The notes beneath the pieces were generated by a model. It ran no database searches and was not told where the DNA came from. It was given only the letters and a program-made list of their open reading frames with translations. Shown piece after piece: positions 203 to 62,700 of a stretch of 64,000 bases of DNA. The DNA lies in contig NC_079168.1 of NCBI RefSeq assembly GCF_947568905.1, positions 88,350,001-88,414,000 of the forward strand, read 5' to 3'. Position numbers and translations under genes: made by a program. The stretch is from Ostrea edulis (lineage: Eukaryota). Positions within the stretch are counted from its first letter, which is position 1, and every line of letters begins with the position of its first letter.

Positions 203-3200
203 TTGGCTCCTATGTACACCTGTAACACATTATCCAAGTTTAGCTTACACCACTCCTCGACCTCCACAGCGAATGTTGCACTGAACAATGCTCGCTTTAC
301 ATTGTTGCTGACACAAGCTTGATACACCTTAGCCAACTGTAAATCAAGGAAAATTAAATCTACTTGGCAGTTTTCACAATCAAAATATCCAGAAACTCAA
401 CAGATGGAAAAGCACTGTCTTTCTAGACATTAAAGTTGAATTTAATACATGTACAGTACATGTTTAAAGAATTCCTTTCAGATATATCAATCAAATTCTG
501 TTTTACCTGCTCTCGAAATCCAGTTTTCCCGTCTTCAAACAATTTATCTGATTCATCAATCACCAACCATTCCACCCTAAATAAACAAATAGTCTTGTCA
601 AGTTGAAATGGAAAGGCTGCTACAATGCAATCCATTGGCGCAAATATTCTGAATTGCGTCCAGCGATACTTACTTTCCAAGCATTGATCAATTAACAAAT
701 ATTGTGAGTAAGAAGGCAGTCACTAATCTTGTAAAATTTCTCCCACATAATGACAATATTACTGCTACAATTATTTCTTTGGAACAACTGTACTACCATT
801 AACACACTGAGACCCCTGTACAATTATTTTTTCAGTACTTACTGACTAAAACTGATATGAGGAAGACCCTGCACAATATGAGGAGGACCTTGTACAATTA
901 TTTCTTCAGCGATATGAGGAGGACCTTGTACGATTATTTTTTTGGTACTTACTGACTAAGACTGATATGAGGAGGACCTTGTACGATTATTTTTTTGGTA
1001 CTTACTGACTAAGACTGATATGAGGAGGACCTCATACGATTATTTTTTTGGTACTTACTGACTAAGACCGATATGAGGAGGACCTCGTACGATTATTTTT
1101 TTGGTACTTGCTGACTAAGACTGATATGAGGAGGACCTTGTACGATTATTTTTTTGGTACTTACTGACTAAGACTGATATGAGGAGGATCTTGTTGCAGC
1201 ATATACACCAGTCTGTTGGGAGTAGACACCAACACATCTACAACAGACAAAATATTCAGTACAAACCTTGTTGTGATAATACCACTGTTTCATCCAATCT
1301 TTGGTATCTTATAAGGGAGTTAACTCTGTCTGATGAAAATAACATTCATTATTTGCAAATGAGTTTTTTTTCTACGAAAAAAAAAATTGCAGCTGATGTA
1401 ACAAGAGACTCTCCCACACACAACAGTACAATCAACCTAGTCCTACTGCATCCTTTATGCCCTTTCCAAAATCTTTCACTCATACTGAGAGGTCACTAGC
1501 CTTTAAAAAAGTGAAACAAAGTTGGACTGATGTTAAGCGCTCAGGGCCATTCAGCTAAGAGAATTCTTTTGTTGTGCCAATGCCTACTGTGGTACTTTTG
1601 AAGTTTCATCCAAAAGACCAACAAATTGCCTAGCAACCGGTGAAGGAACAGTGGCTTCCTATTTTAATAACTCAAGCCTGTTGTGGCCAAGGCTTGAACT
1701 CGATCACCATTAGGATCACAGTTATTAGAACATTCTTAATATTACAGCACTCTACACTACAATATGAATGCCTTGTCTAAGTTCAATCTTTATTTACATT
1801 ACAACGATTAACAAAAAAGTTCTACAACTTTTATTAATGCTTCTCATCGGTTCAGATATTTAGGCAAAGGGACCATTGGTGTGGGAAGACACCGGAGTAC
1901 CGGGAGGAAACCAACGTCTTCGAGAGGGTGACAACAATGCCCTCTCACTTACAACCACGGCTGATCCTGAGGATCAAACAGCGCAAGAAGCGAGCATGTT
2001 AACTACTACTCTACCAGGACATCCTGAATAATGTACTAACTTGATGATCGTAGTTTCATTGTTCTTAAAATGAACAGCAACACAAATGTATAACATTGTA
2101 AATCTTTGATTAAGAGAGTTTACACTACCTTCTGTTTAGGTAAGCTGAAAACATGATCTGATCGCAGGAGGTGTTTAGAAGAACAGCCTCATATCTGATT
2201 ATAGGAGGAATTTAGAAGAACAGCCTCATGATCTGATTGCAGGAGGTGTTTAGAAGAACAGCCTCATGATCTGATTGCAGGAGGTGTTTAGAAGAACAGC
2301 CTCATGATCTGATTGCAGGAGGTGTTTAGGAGAACAGCCTCATGATCTGACTACAGGAGGTGTTTAGAAGAGCCTCAAATGGAAAATGCCATTCAGGAAT
2401 TAAACACAGAAAACTAGAATGCCTACCAAACTTTTTCTCCAATTGTTTCTCTGTCGTTGCCTTGTTGATGTAATGAGCCTTCAGTCCTATACCCTCAGAT
2501 AGCCGCAAAAATTCTCGGTATATCTGTTAGATATTGAGAAAATGGACATGTTTTTAAACATTAATCACACAAATAAATTTTAAATGTTTCTGTGCATCAC
2601 AATCATAAGTCATTGATTCTAATAATGTTTGGAAACTACAATCAGTTAAAAACGTAACATCGGAGTCACATTTATATTTATACCACTTGGTTTTGAAACT
2701 TCTCCATAACTGAGATTCCTAGTACTATGTGAGAACATATATTTAATTCAACTTGAATTTGAGAGAACATTAAATCTTTACTGCTATTCTCTGAAGGACT
2801 TTAAATAAATGAGATGATTTAGATTTCACAAGAGAAGCTTCACACAAATTTATGAGAATAATAATTACTCATGTATCATAAGAAATCTAGATGATTATTT
2901 GAAAATTTCCCTATAATTTTGACCTTTCCAGATACTGCATAAAAATTGAATTAAAGTTATAAGCTCTCTAGTCCTACGAATTCTGTGTCAGGTACAAAGT
3001 ATACACTGCAACAGTCCCATCAAGTACTGCACTCAACACCAGTGGACTTGCCCAATACTAACTTCTGCCAAAGTTAACAATTGTTTGTAATCAATATTTA
3101 GTGTCTCAAATCTCTACATTCTGCATTAATTCCAGTCACCTTAACCTTTTACATGTGTGACATGATCTAAATCAAATTTTCTCTTGTATAAATCTAAATG

Positions 3201-59700: not shown

Positions 59701-62700
59701 TATTCAAAATGAGGCTTCAGTCCTGTAACTACAGTGGAGAAGTTTAGGCCGACTCTTTTCTCAATCTCTGACGGTTGTCCAGCGTTGAGTATAACTCCAT
59801 ACTGATCAATCGTGCCAGAGGATGTTACAATGGGGTCCCACTCCATGTAGACCTGGGAACTGCTTTGTACAGTCACAGTCTTTAAGGCTGGGATATTATC
59901 AGGTATATCAGTTGGCATAGACACAGACTTAATGGAACTGCTTGTGTTGCCTACACTGGTTCCCACTATTAAATAGTAACTGTACGTGCTGCCTGGCTCC
60001 AGTCCCGAGTCGGGTGAAGACAATGCTTTACCAAAATACACATTCCTGGCTCCCCGGTGAGAAATTCTCATTATGGAATAAAACTTGAGTAATCCATTCA
60101 TTGATTCTGGAGTGTCCCAAAAAATCAGAACCGAGGTGGTGGTGAGAGCCACAATCCTGGGAGGTAGAACACCTGCAATAATCAGACAGCAGGTTCTGAA
60201 TTCTATAACCACTGTCTTACTTTTGAAATGTGTACAATATCGATAGCAGTTCAAATCAAATTTCATGCTTTTGATTGAAATTGTAATAAAGAGAGTTAAT
60301 TGTATCTTACTAAATGCTTTTCAAACTGAAACTGTCTAAATGGGACAACCCCCCCCCCCCCCCCCCCCCTATCATTTACCCTAATATGACCTACTAACCC
60401 TTGCATTAGTTTTGTGTAAAAATTACATATGCGAAGCATTGGGTCATAGGATATTCGACTTAAAGCATAGAAATCACCTTTTACGACAGATAGACAGGCA
60501 GGATGAAGCCAATACCCCCCCCCCCCCTCTCCCCACACATGTACAGAATGTTTTGTTTTGATCGGGAACATATAAGCAATTTCCTTAATCAAAGATGATT
60601 TCAAGACAATTGTTCAATTCTTGGTTGTAAAAAATAGCATTATAGGACAAGAATGGCTAAGAAATGATCTTATCGTAAAAATTTCTATCAAAAAAATCAT
60701 TACCTTCAGGTAACTCATCTTTGGTTTGAAAATGGACTTCCTTACTCTTAGTACAACCCACTCTGGTGCAGACCTCAATAGAAATGCTGTAGTTGGAATA
60801 TGGCTTTAGGTCTGTAATCAGGAAATCAGGCAGGTACATAAAATGGAATTGAGTAAAAATTTTGTTTCTCACTCCATTAGCTTCAATTGGGTATCTTTAA
60901 TTTATTAAAATTAACATTGCATTTCTTGACATTAACCTACTGTACATGTATATATTTGCCTATAAGTTGGTTTGCCTATAAGTCATTTGTATAGTTTTTA
61001 GGTTATTTTGGAGGGAATTGCCATTGACCCATTTGTAAGTCGGTTTAACTTTTTTCAAGAGTCGGTTTACAATTTCAAATCAATGCTCTAATGTTTTTAC
61101 TTGTGTTTCAAATAATATTTTGAGAAATGCGTCAATATTTGATTTTTTCCCCCAACAAATCAATTTCATATTAATACTCTTTTGTATTCATCTGTGTTCT
61201 AATTATGTTTTAGGATGTGACATCGATATTTCACTTTTTATTCTCAGCAAATTAAACAGTTACTATTTTATTTATTTCGTCCATGTTTTTGTTGTTTAAA
61301 AATATTAGGCTATATATTACGCCATCCAGAAATATACTAATCTTCTTAGGACACTCCAATAAGTTGGACATAAGAGTTTTGGACCAAAATTTAACTCCCA
61401 AAAATCCGACTTATAGGCGAGTATGTATATACGGTAGTGTTTTTGATATTAACCTTGCAATTATTGATATCAATCTTTTGTTATTGGTATTAGCCTCATG
61501 TTAACTGATATTAACTTTGTGTTACTGACGTTCATCTTGTTTTACCGACACAGATCTTTATGTTAATGACCTATGTTTATTTGTAATAACCTTGTGTTTA
61601 CAGGCATTGACCTCAAGTTCTTGACATTAACTTTGTCCTCACATTGACCTTGTGTTATCAACATTAATCTTTTACTGTTGACGTAAACATCATTTTTACT
61701 GTATTAATTTGACAACAGGAGATCAGGAGATAGACTTACCTCTCACTGTGACTGACAACAGGCGATAGACTTACCTCTCACTGACTGACAACAGGAGATA
61801 GACTTACCTTTCACTGACTGACAACAGGAGACAGACTTACCTCTCACTGTGACTGACAACAGGAGATAGACTTACCCTTCACTGACTGACAACAGGAGAT
61901 AGACTTACCTCTCACTGACTGACAACAGGAGATAGACTTACCTCTCACTGACGGACAACAGGAGATAGACTTACCTCTCACATTGACTGACAACTGGAGA
62001 TAGACTTACCTCTCACTGACTGACAACAGGAGATAATAGACTTACCTCTTACTGACTGACAACAGGAGATAGACTTACCTCTCACTGTGACTGACAGCAG
62101 GAGATAGACTTACCTCTCACTGACTGACAACAGGAGATAGACTTACCCCTCACTGACTGACAACAAGAGATAGACTTACGCTTCACTGACTGACAACAGG
62201 AGACAGACTTACCTCTCACTGTGACTGACAACAGGAGACAGACTTACTCCTAACTGACTGACAACAGGAGACAGACTTACCTCTCACATTGACTGACAAC
62301 AGGAGACAGACTTACCTCTCACTGTGACTGACAACAGGAGACAGACTTACTCCTAACTGACTGACAACAGGAGATAGACTTACCTCTCACTGACTGACAA
62401 CAGGAGATAGACTTACCCCTCACTGACTGACAACAGGAGATAGACTTACCTCTCACTGACTGACAACAGGAAATAGACTTACCTCTCACTGACTGACAAC
62501 AGGAGATATACTTACCCCTCACTGACTGACAACAGGAGACAGACTTACCTCTCACTGTGACTGACAGCAGTATGGTTTTAATTGCCTGTCCATTAGACAC
62601 ATACAGGACATAGTTAGTCAGGATACCGTTGGGTTTGGATGGCGGTTTCCAGGACACATCCACACTCTTTGACTGGACCTGGATGATGGTTGGGACATCA

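Follow-up and report, generated by a model that had tools for sequence, protein, structure and literature searches.

The window analysed here is a stretch of 64,000 nucleotides of Ostrea edulis (contig NC_079168.1, forward-strand positions 88,350,001 to 88,414,000). It carries most of the exons of DDX52, the whole of RRP15, a run of open reading frames (ORFs) resembling KIZ, and the 3' part of USH2A (usherin). In these genes several introns begin with a minisatellite whose unit copies the end of the preceding exon together with the 5' splice site (donor) and the next intronic bases. The extra downstream donors are called decoys below. Window positions 1 to 13266 match locus L009 of assembly record OX387708.1 at 100% identity. 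Minisatellites were detected with Tandem Repeats Finder (TRF), which returned 71 rows for the window. Genes and donor arrays are listed in Table 1.

The exon ends were fixed by protein homology and cross-species conservation, independently of the arrays. DDX52 was mapped by tblastn with an O. edulis RefSeq protein (P0297, 'probable ATP-dependent RNA helicase DDX52'); most of its segments are 100% identical to the window and the others 86 to 98%. Oyster DDX52 proteins were reached with a profile built from nemertean DDX52 and the window's own exons; the sea-urchin DDX52 used as a protein-search query gave no mollusc among the matches. The junctions of exons 1 to 8 are exact, and the end of exon 9 near 202 was set by tblastn mapping. 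Intron 1 is of the GC-AG type (window 7180, minus strand, TTAAAT/gcaagt). The protein reads PTRELAKQ/IYREF over the first donor at 3658 and PPHISLSQ/VEWLV over the first donor at 1165. At the RRP15 exon ending at 10215, the Pfam Rrp15p match reaches the end of the profile and the block conserved in Crassostrea angulata and Saccostrea echinata stops there as well. The USH2A exon ends 57182, 51403 and 49265 were placed by alignment with Crassostrea gigas, which runs to the same bases, and the end at 62549 by an fn3-containing ORF and splice scoring. The 3-kb USH2A exon holds nine fn3 stretches. The last coding exon (47823-47746) is separated from the preceding one by the intron 49264-47824. One further usherin exon (P0336, 77% identical) could not be located.

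Six TRF intervals (911-1194, 3367-3681, 10199-10579, 28446-28664, 50749-51435 and 61724-62570) start within an exon end and, printed in register, consist of successive copies of the exon tail with its GT donor. The junction-spanning arrays overall have units of 33 to 72 bp in 3 to 25 copies with 90 to 97% matches by TRF. Five of these intact arrays lie at exon ends fixed by homology (DDX52 3658 and 1165, RRP15 10215, USH2A 62549 and 51403). All five had been proposed in an initial annotation made from the sequence alone, and they are borne out by TRF, by the register of the units and by the independent exon ends. The 53-bp unit consists of the last 30 nt of DDX52 exon 7, GTAAGTACC and 14 intronic nt, and the authentic donor directly follows 1165. 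At DDX52 exon 5 the 40-bp unit contains the final 24 nt of the exon (...PTRELAKQ), GTAAAC and the next intronic bases, with the authentic donor after 3658. The 41-bp unit joins the final 17 nt of RRP15 exon 4 to GTAATA and the following intronic bases; here the authentic donor comes after 10215. In USH2A, the unit of the 50749-51435 array is made of the final 33 nt of the 75-nt exon, GTAAGA and the next intronic bases, and the 33-bp unit at the fn3 exon has about 22 final exonic nt, GTAAGTCT and the next intronic bases. In the part of DDX52 that lies beyond the window (8.4 kb), a 54-bp array of 4.6 copies follows exon 11 and a 38-bp array of 17 copies follows exon 13, which brings the gene to four donor arrays among 14 introns. 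The exon-11 and exon-13 segments match the O. edulis protein at 96 to 100% by tblastn segments, which do not fix the exact junctions.

Table 1. Genes, donor arrays and one control array in the 64,000-nt window of O. edulis
Feature	Position	Strand	Description
DDX52	7266 to 202	minus	nine exons; tblastn of O. edulis RefSeq protein P0297
DDX52 exon 7 (1237-1165) donor array	855-1194	minus	53 bp × 5.4, 96% matches; decayed tail 855-898
Control intronic array	2152-2371	minus	38 bp × 5.8; starts 56 nt past the DDX52 exon 6 donor
DDX52 exon 5 (3801-3658) donor array	3242-3681	minus	40 bp × 7.8 (3367-3681); decayed tail to 3242
RRP15	7519 to 12091	plus	five exons; Pfam Rrp15p and conservation in C. 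angulata and S. echinata
RRP15 exon 4 (10050-10215) donor array	10199-10598	plus	41 bp × 9.3
KIZ-like gene	25-29 kb	minus	run of ORFs; predicted exons (ORFs) only
KIZ-like decayed case, predicted exon end 26462 (GT 26461-26460)	25759-26462	minus	z 5.7 to junction
KIZ-like array, predicted exon end 28637	28446-28664	minus	72 bp × 3.0; copies exon end + GTAAGT; exon is an ORF only
USH2A (usherin), 3' part	64000 to stop 47746 after ...TDTHL	minus	fn3, JGI homologue names, C. gigas conservation
USH2A penultimate exon (49432-49265) decayed donor array	48966-49265	minus	newly found; 49 bp × 5 (48966-49208), z 7.6
USH2A 75-nt exon (51477-51403) donor array	50749-51435	minus	49 bp × 14, 97% matches
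USH2A 3-kb exon (60172-57182) decayed case	56985-57182	minus	46 bp × 3.2 (57001-57147), z 7.3
USH2A fn3 exon (62738-62549) donor array	61724-62570	minus	33 bp × 25, 90% matches

Three arrays are decayed: the donor core is gone from the units and the exon-derived flanks are still recognisable. The initial annotation had described a degenerate case at 57182, an exon end conserved in C. gigas, and the comparison of the array with its own junction upholds it. None of 2000 shuffles reached the score, either here or at 26462. Units without the donor core occupy 57001-57147, and the array is closed by a second copy of CTATAGGTAAT near 56985. The 57182 junction is also present, at 99.5 to 99.8% identity, in three independent short-read assemblies of O. 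edulis, all of which stop at base 57105 inside the first repeat unit. At 48966-49208 the units derive from the exon end at 49265 and the first bases of the intron, with the GTAAG core deleted in the decoys. At 26462 a related 42-bp array of 5.6 copies (26162-26397) is followed by a 32-bp array of 3.4 copies (25759-25869), and the decoy GTAAGT has become GTACAA. This case and the one at 28637 had been assigned to KIZ. The arrays do copy predicted exon ends; the exons are known as ORFs only and the gene name is unconfirmed, Pfam being blank even at E 5. A language-model search with the KIZ-like exons gave a weak lead, one exon reaching kizuna clusters at rank 2 to 3 with a score of 0.78 and another returning bacterial peptidase noise.

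The enrichment at donors was calculated for the genes with verified exons, i.e., all of DDX52 (with the stretch beyond the window), RRP15 and the 3' part of USH2A. The null model spread unit-sized seeds evenly over introns and donor junctions, so that donors made up 6% of the target. Nine of the 16 minisatellites are anchored at a donor, compared with 0.97 expected (binomial P 9e-8). By a stricter count, in which the TRF interval must physically span the junction, the figure is 6 of 16 (P 2e-4). An array is present at 9 of 32 donors and at 0 of 32 acceptors (Fisher P 0.002). A symmetric probe independent of TRF (12 exonic plus 12 intronic nt, at most 4 mismatches, searched in the adjoining intron) found copies for 5 of 27 donors and 0 of 26 acceptors. 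No array copying an acceptor was thus detected in the window by either the probes or the array count, as the initial annotation had stated. Junction arrays also have more copies than the other arrays (median 7.8 versus 3.2, P 0.04). In the part of DDX52 outside the window, which the initial annotation had not seen, two of three minisatellites are donor-anchored, a small sample from the same gene. It was concluded that the donor arrays are real and well beyond chance, and that donor junctions are struck about nine times more than intron stretches of equal size. All-against-all comparison of eight units gave a single pair above z 3, which shares only the AACAGGTAA donor region. The units at separate loci have nothing in common except the donor consensus, and a dispersed repeat, transposon or introner family was rejected, in agreement with the earlier statement that they do not form one transposon or satellite family.

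Comparison with other oysters bears on the age of the arrays. In C. angulata, a stretch of 28 kb with DDX52, RRP15, the end of usherin and two other genes has no junction array and almost no minisatellite. The C. gigas introns orthologous to those after 57182, 51403 and 49265 have no array, and they measure about 375, 290 and 270 bp compared with about 1.0, 0.9 and 1.4 kb in O. edulis. In S. echinata, the DDX52 exon-5 and RRP15 arrays are absent and a 34-bp array of 18 copies is found at the orthologous DDX52 exon-7 donor. The unit borders at this donor differ: 22 exonic nt, GTAAGTAC and 4 nt in S. echinata versus 30 exonic nt, GTAAGTACC and 14 nt in O. edulis. The DDX52 exon-7 donor was probably struck at least twice, separately in the two genera. 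Because the introns are shared and the arrays are absent at the Crassostrea orthologues, the host introns checked are old (positions common to Crassostrea or Saccostrea) and the arrays young and lineage-specific, a question that the initial annotation had raised and that receives a positive answer from the absence in Crassostrea and the independent exon-7 array in Saccostrea. On the sequences compared, the array-forming process looks much more active in O. edulis than in Crassostrea.

The decoys were then compared between young and older arrays. GT is kept in 24 of 24 decoys of the 33-bp USH2A array and in 13 of 13 of the 49-bp array at 51403; the other young O. edulis arrays have intact decoy donors in 7/8, 5/6, 3/4 and 2/2 cases. 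In the young O. edulis arrays GT is neither extra-conserved nor extra-lost (mismatch 3.2% versus 4.8% at other positions, P 0.6). In the older S. echinata array no position varies nearly as much as the G of GT, which 8 of 18 decoys have lost versus about 1 of 18 elsewhere. This pattern, together with the three decayed arrays, is better explained by decoys that are tolerated but mildly harmful than by sites retained to bind U1, and the early decay of the donor core in older arrays argues against a conserved U1-binding role. Most unit lengths (40, 53, 41, 49 and 38 bp) are not multiples of 3 and would shift the reading frame. In the 33-bp USH2A array the exon frame is open over six units (GKSISCCQSVR repeated; 62322-62765, minus strand), and splicing at decoys 2 to 7 would insert 11-residue blocks without a stop. 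Read by eye, the 54-bp unit after DDX52 exon 11 is also open in frame; the 72-bp unit contains a stop.

The initial annotation knew of no description of such arrays as a systematic feature. Arrays of this kind have in fact been described: junction-spanning minisatellites are known in human F7, CBS, IFI6, LMNB2 and PDGF (PMC1557585). In intervening sequence 7 (IVS7) of F7, a 37-bp variable number tandem repeat (VNTR) of 5 to 9 copies has its first unit over the exon 7/IVS7 border, and of the identical donors only the most upstream is used, the second taking over when the first is mutated (PMC1557585). The arrays in the window are alike in that the first unit spans the exon end and donor and is followed by identical pseudo-donors in the intron. 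The most upstream donor is probably the productive one here too, since the annotated DDX52 protein joins the first donors at the two arrays within the window. F7 differs in being one polymorphic locus whose unit includes only 4 exonic nt; in the window 17 to 33 exonic nt are copied, the copy number reaches 25, and each gene has many junctions affected. CBS intron 13 (31-bp VNTR) and IFI6 (6-16) intron 2 likewise carry junction-spanning arrays with 15 to 25 donor copies; there the first two pseudo-donors are constitutively used and give alternative mRNAs (PMC1557585), unlike the window, for which no such use is known.

The term 'mirage' for comparable structures in amphioxus was reportedly coined by Canestro et al. 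in 2002. Amphioxus mirages (Adh3, globins, TnC, PGBD5) are tandem duplications at 5' and 3' exon-intron borders that leave normal splicing undisturbed and have been put forward as a possible origin of new introns (PMC3087553, PMC3902484). They resemble the oyster arrays as border duplications that recur in many genes of one lineage and share no sequence between loci, the units measuring from tens of bp to about 150 bp. They differ in affecting both borders, as opposed to donors only in this window, in the somatic and allelic instability shown for amphioxus, and in belonging to another phylum. The Rogers model, in which an intron is gained when a segment with AGGT is duplicated in tandem (discussed in PMC3087553 and PMC2891723), shares the feature that a tandem duplication containing AG/GT gives spare splice sites. 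The suggestion that the arrays are raw material for such intron gain is not sustained: the host introns checked are old and occupy the same positions without arrays in C. angulata, C. gigas and S. echinata, and no new intron is formed, the arrays merely lengthening old ones. Literature searches gave no report of junction arrays for oysters and no genome-wide study. The kind is therefore known, and what is unusual is its density in Ostrea, the roughly nine-fold donor excess, the probable repeat strike on one orthologous donor and the visible decay of decoys with age.

The arrays are probably tolerated minisatellites seeded at junctions, of the mirage or F7 IVS7 type. At each locus a short segment of the exon-intron border (0 to 33 exonic nt, the GT donor and 11 to 44 intronic nt) would have been tandemly duplicated independently, and slippage or unequal exchange would then have extended it to an old intron starting with 3 to 25 copies of its own donor. 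By the mechanism known from human F7, the spliceosome would pick the exon-proximal first donor and the downstream copies would be removed with the intron. The sequences show that the extra donors are not maintained, young arrays being intact and older ones losing GT or the donor core first. Birth or growth of the arrays would in addition favour splice junctions. Several points weigh against this reading. The two KIZ-like cases rest on predicted exons. The use of the first donor at DDX52 3658 and 1165 is inferred from the annotated protein and by analogy rather than from RNA; a search for sequencing runs turned up DNA-like runs only. Some of the GT losses in the S. echinata array spread when units were duplicated, and the eight cannot be counted as independent events. 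The window was chosen for this feature, which makes the enrichment P values within it optimistic, and the unselected sample is small. Finally, tolerance accounts for the persistence of the arrays and not for the excess at donors.

Survivorship would be one answer to that last point. If duplications arose evenly along genes, those in exons and acceptors would be removed and those spanning donors would survive through the first donor, with no bias of mutation or growth. Use of the first donor would make donor-spanning duplications harmless (PMC1557585; DDX52 protein), and the lack of acceptor arrays in the window is expected if these are more harmful. Duplications deep in an intron would do no more harm, and by target size they should be about 16 times as numerous; instead more than half of the arrays fall on about 6% of the target. 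The junction arrays are also the richer ones in copies, and the same DDX52 donor appears to have expanded separately in two genera. Survivorship without any other bias is therefore unlikely. Where the initial annotation left the choice between a mutational process targeted to donors and survivorship, the excess beyond neutral placement shows that survivorship alone is insufficient and that either the birth or the growth of arrays is biased.

Selection might instead keep the 5' splice sites for a function, as pads for the U1 small nuclear ribonucleoprotein (exon definition, protection from premature polyadenylation) or as alternative donors. Near-complete retention of decoy GTs in young arrays, the open frame over six 33-bp units and the use of the first two pseudo-sites in human IFI6 and CBS (PMC1557585) speak for it. 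In the same young arrays, though, GT is retained no better than other positions, the core is the first part lost in older arrays, most units would break the frame, and the annotated DDX52 protein uses first donors only. Arrays are also absent at the orthologous junctions of Crassostrea, so the exons do not need them. We regard such a role, including the U1 function put forward in the initial annotation, as improbable. That the arrays are artefacts, either assembly errors or exon ends inferred from the arrays themselves, is harder still to credit. The sequences compared were assemblies, which would leave room for an assembly error. Arrays of 150 to 850 bp are short relative to long reads, and another genus, assembled independently, has a like array at the corresponding donor. 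The three short-read assemblies agree on the 57182 junction and break off at one common base in the repeat, as they would at a true tandem repeat, and the exon ends owe nothing to the arrays.

If junction-seeded, tolerated minisatellites are the right reading, the failure of survivorship alone to yield the nine-fold excess over the intronic background implies that their origin or expansion is biased towards junctions. It is possible, and we put it forward tentatively, that splice junctions, and donors in particular, are true hotspots of minisatellite birth or growth in the Ostrea lineage, at about ten times the intronic background, in a lineage-specific burst that lengthened old introns and repeatedly struck the same donor in related genera. 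One possible cause is that DNA breaks where the polymerase pauses at 5' splice sites and is then rejoined by an end joining prone to duplication; misaligned repair synthesis at the edge between a conserved exon and a highly polymorphic intron is another. Oysters and lancelets, the two groups in which junction arrays are common, are both extremely heterozygous. Each array amounts to a natural experiment on the choice that the spliceosome makes between identical 5' splice sites, and where other genomes supply one such case this one would supply hundreds. Should the excess hold genome-wide, minisatellite birth would be non-random relative to gene structure, with a bearing on how minisatellites start, on the differences in intron length between oyster genera and on tandem-duplication models of intron change. 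In practice the arrays can mislead gene prediction and read mapping in oyster genomes, and they are likely to be highly polymorphic markers beside exons.

Not every minisatellite at the locus is related to a donor. The initial annotation predicted a junction at 48627, where no exon end exists; the 39-bp array of 10 copies at 48253-48649 (minus strand) sits within the last intron of USH2A and shows no relation to the nearest donor junction (z 0.2). The orthologous intron in Crassostrea is about 270 bp and has no array. The control array in DDX52 intron 6 is likewise unrelated to its nearest donor (z -0.4), and descent from the nearest donor was also rejected for the array at 63662-63783 (z 1.1). 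A 65-bp array past DDX52 (L009 24884-25525) was rejected as exon-linked, the adjoining sequence resembling by eye a short interspersed nuclear element derived from tRNA and not an exon. A 32-bp array of 4.9 copies about 120 nt past the DDX52 stop (L009 21753-21911) is probably in the 3' untranslated region, and its unit contains AGAG/GTTAAA. By rough count, minisatellites in the syntenic regions number about 19 in 64 kb for O. edulis, about 6 in 32 kb for S. echinata and 1 to 2 in 28 kb for C. angulata. At the junctions compared across genera, O. edulis introns are 2 to 5 times longer.

A purine-rich minisatellite of 4.6 kb (window 20076-24675; units of 26 to 42 bp, about 150 copies of AGAGAGTAGTGAGTGGTCAAGGTT) is strongly skewed in GC, and its plus strand has GTGAGT and AAGGTTAG motifs; an exon was found at neither end. 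A satellite of about 155 to 210 bp, CCCCGGGGG flanked by GGGGCCACAAT, occurs at 17310-17960 and 45283-46599. By eye, and not from aligned units, the same family includes 166-bp arrays in a C. angulata DDX52 intron and an S. echinata RRP15 intron (L007 14591-16250; L008 862-2081). We take it to resemble the oyster Cg170 or HindIII satellite linked to Helitron-like elements. At 37238-38244 there are arrays of 20, 21, 42 and 84 bp built on the palindrome AATTGATGCGCGCATCAATT.

Some features of the genes themselves were also recorded. RRP15 exon 2 contains a (GAT)n run at 8384-8457 (plus strand) that encodes an aspartate-rich tract. Beside the 3' end of RRP15, the minus strand carries four conserved coding blocks at 12629-13960 (13960-13826, 13636-13520, 13234-13163 and 12745-12629), which are 70 to 91% identical at the protein level to the last exons of a C. 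angulata gene annotated as 'usherin' (6033 aa). The O. edulis 'usherin' annotation (5808 aa) also runs to 12629, 35 kb beyond the ...DTHL stop exon (47746), which is conserved, and the KIZ-like ORFs fall within it; the extension could reflect gene models that were merged, or an alternative 3' end. Around the promoter region that DDX52 and RRP15 share, copies of one element of about 350 to 900 bp with an ORF motif are found at 6126-7100 and 7960-8300, in both orientations and with about 85% mutual identity.

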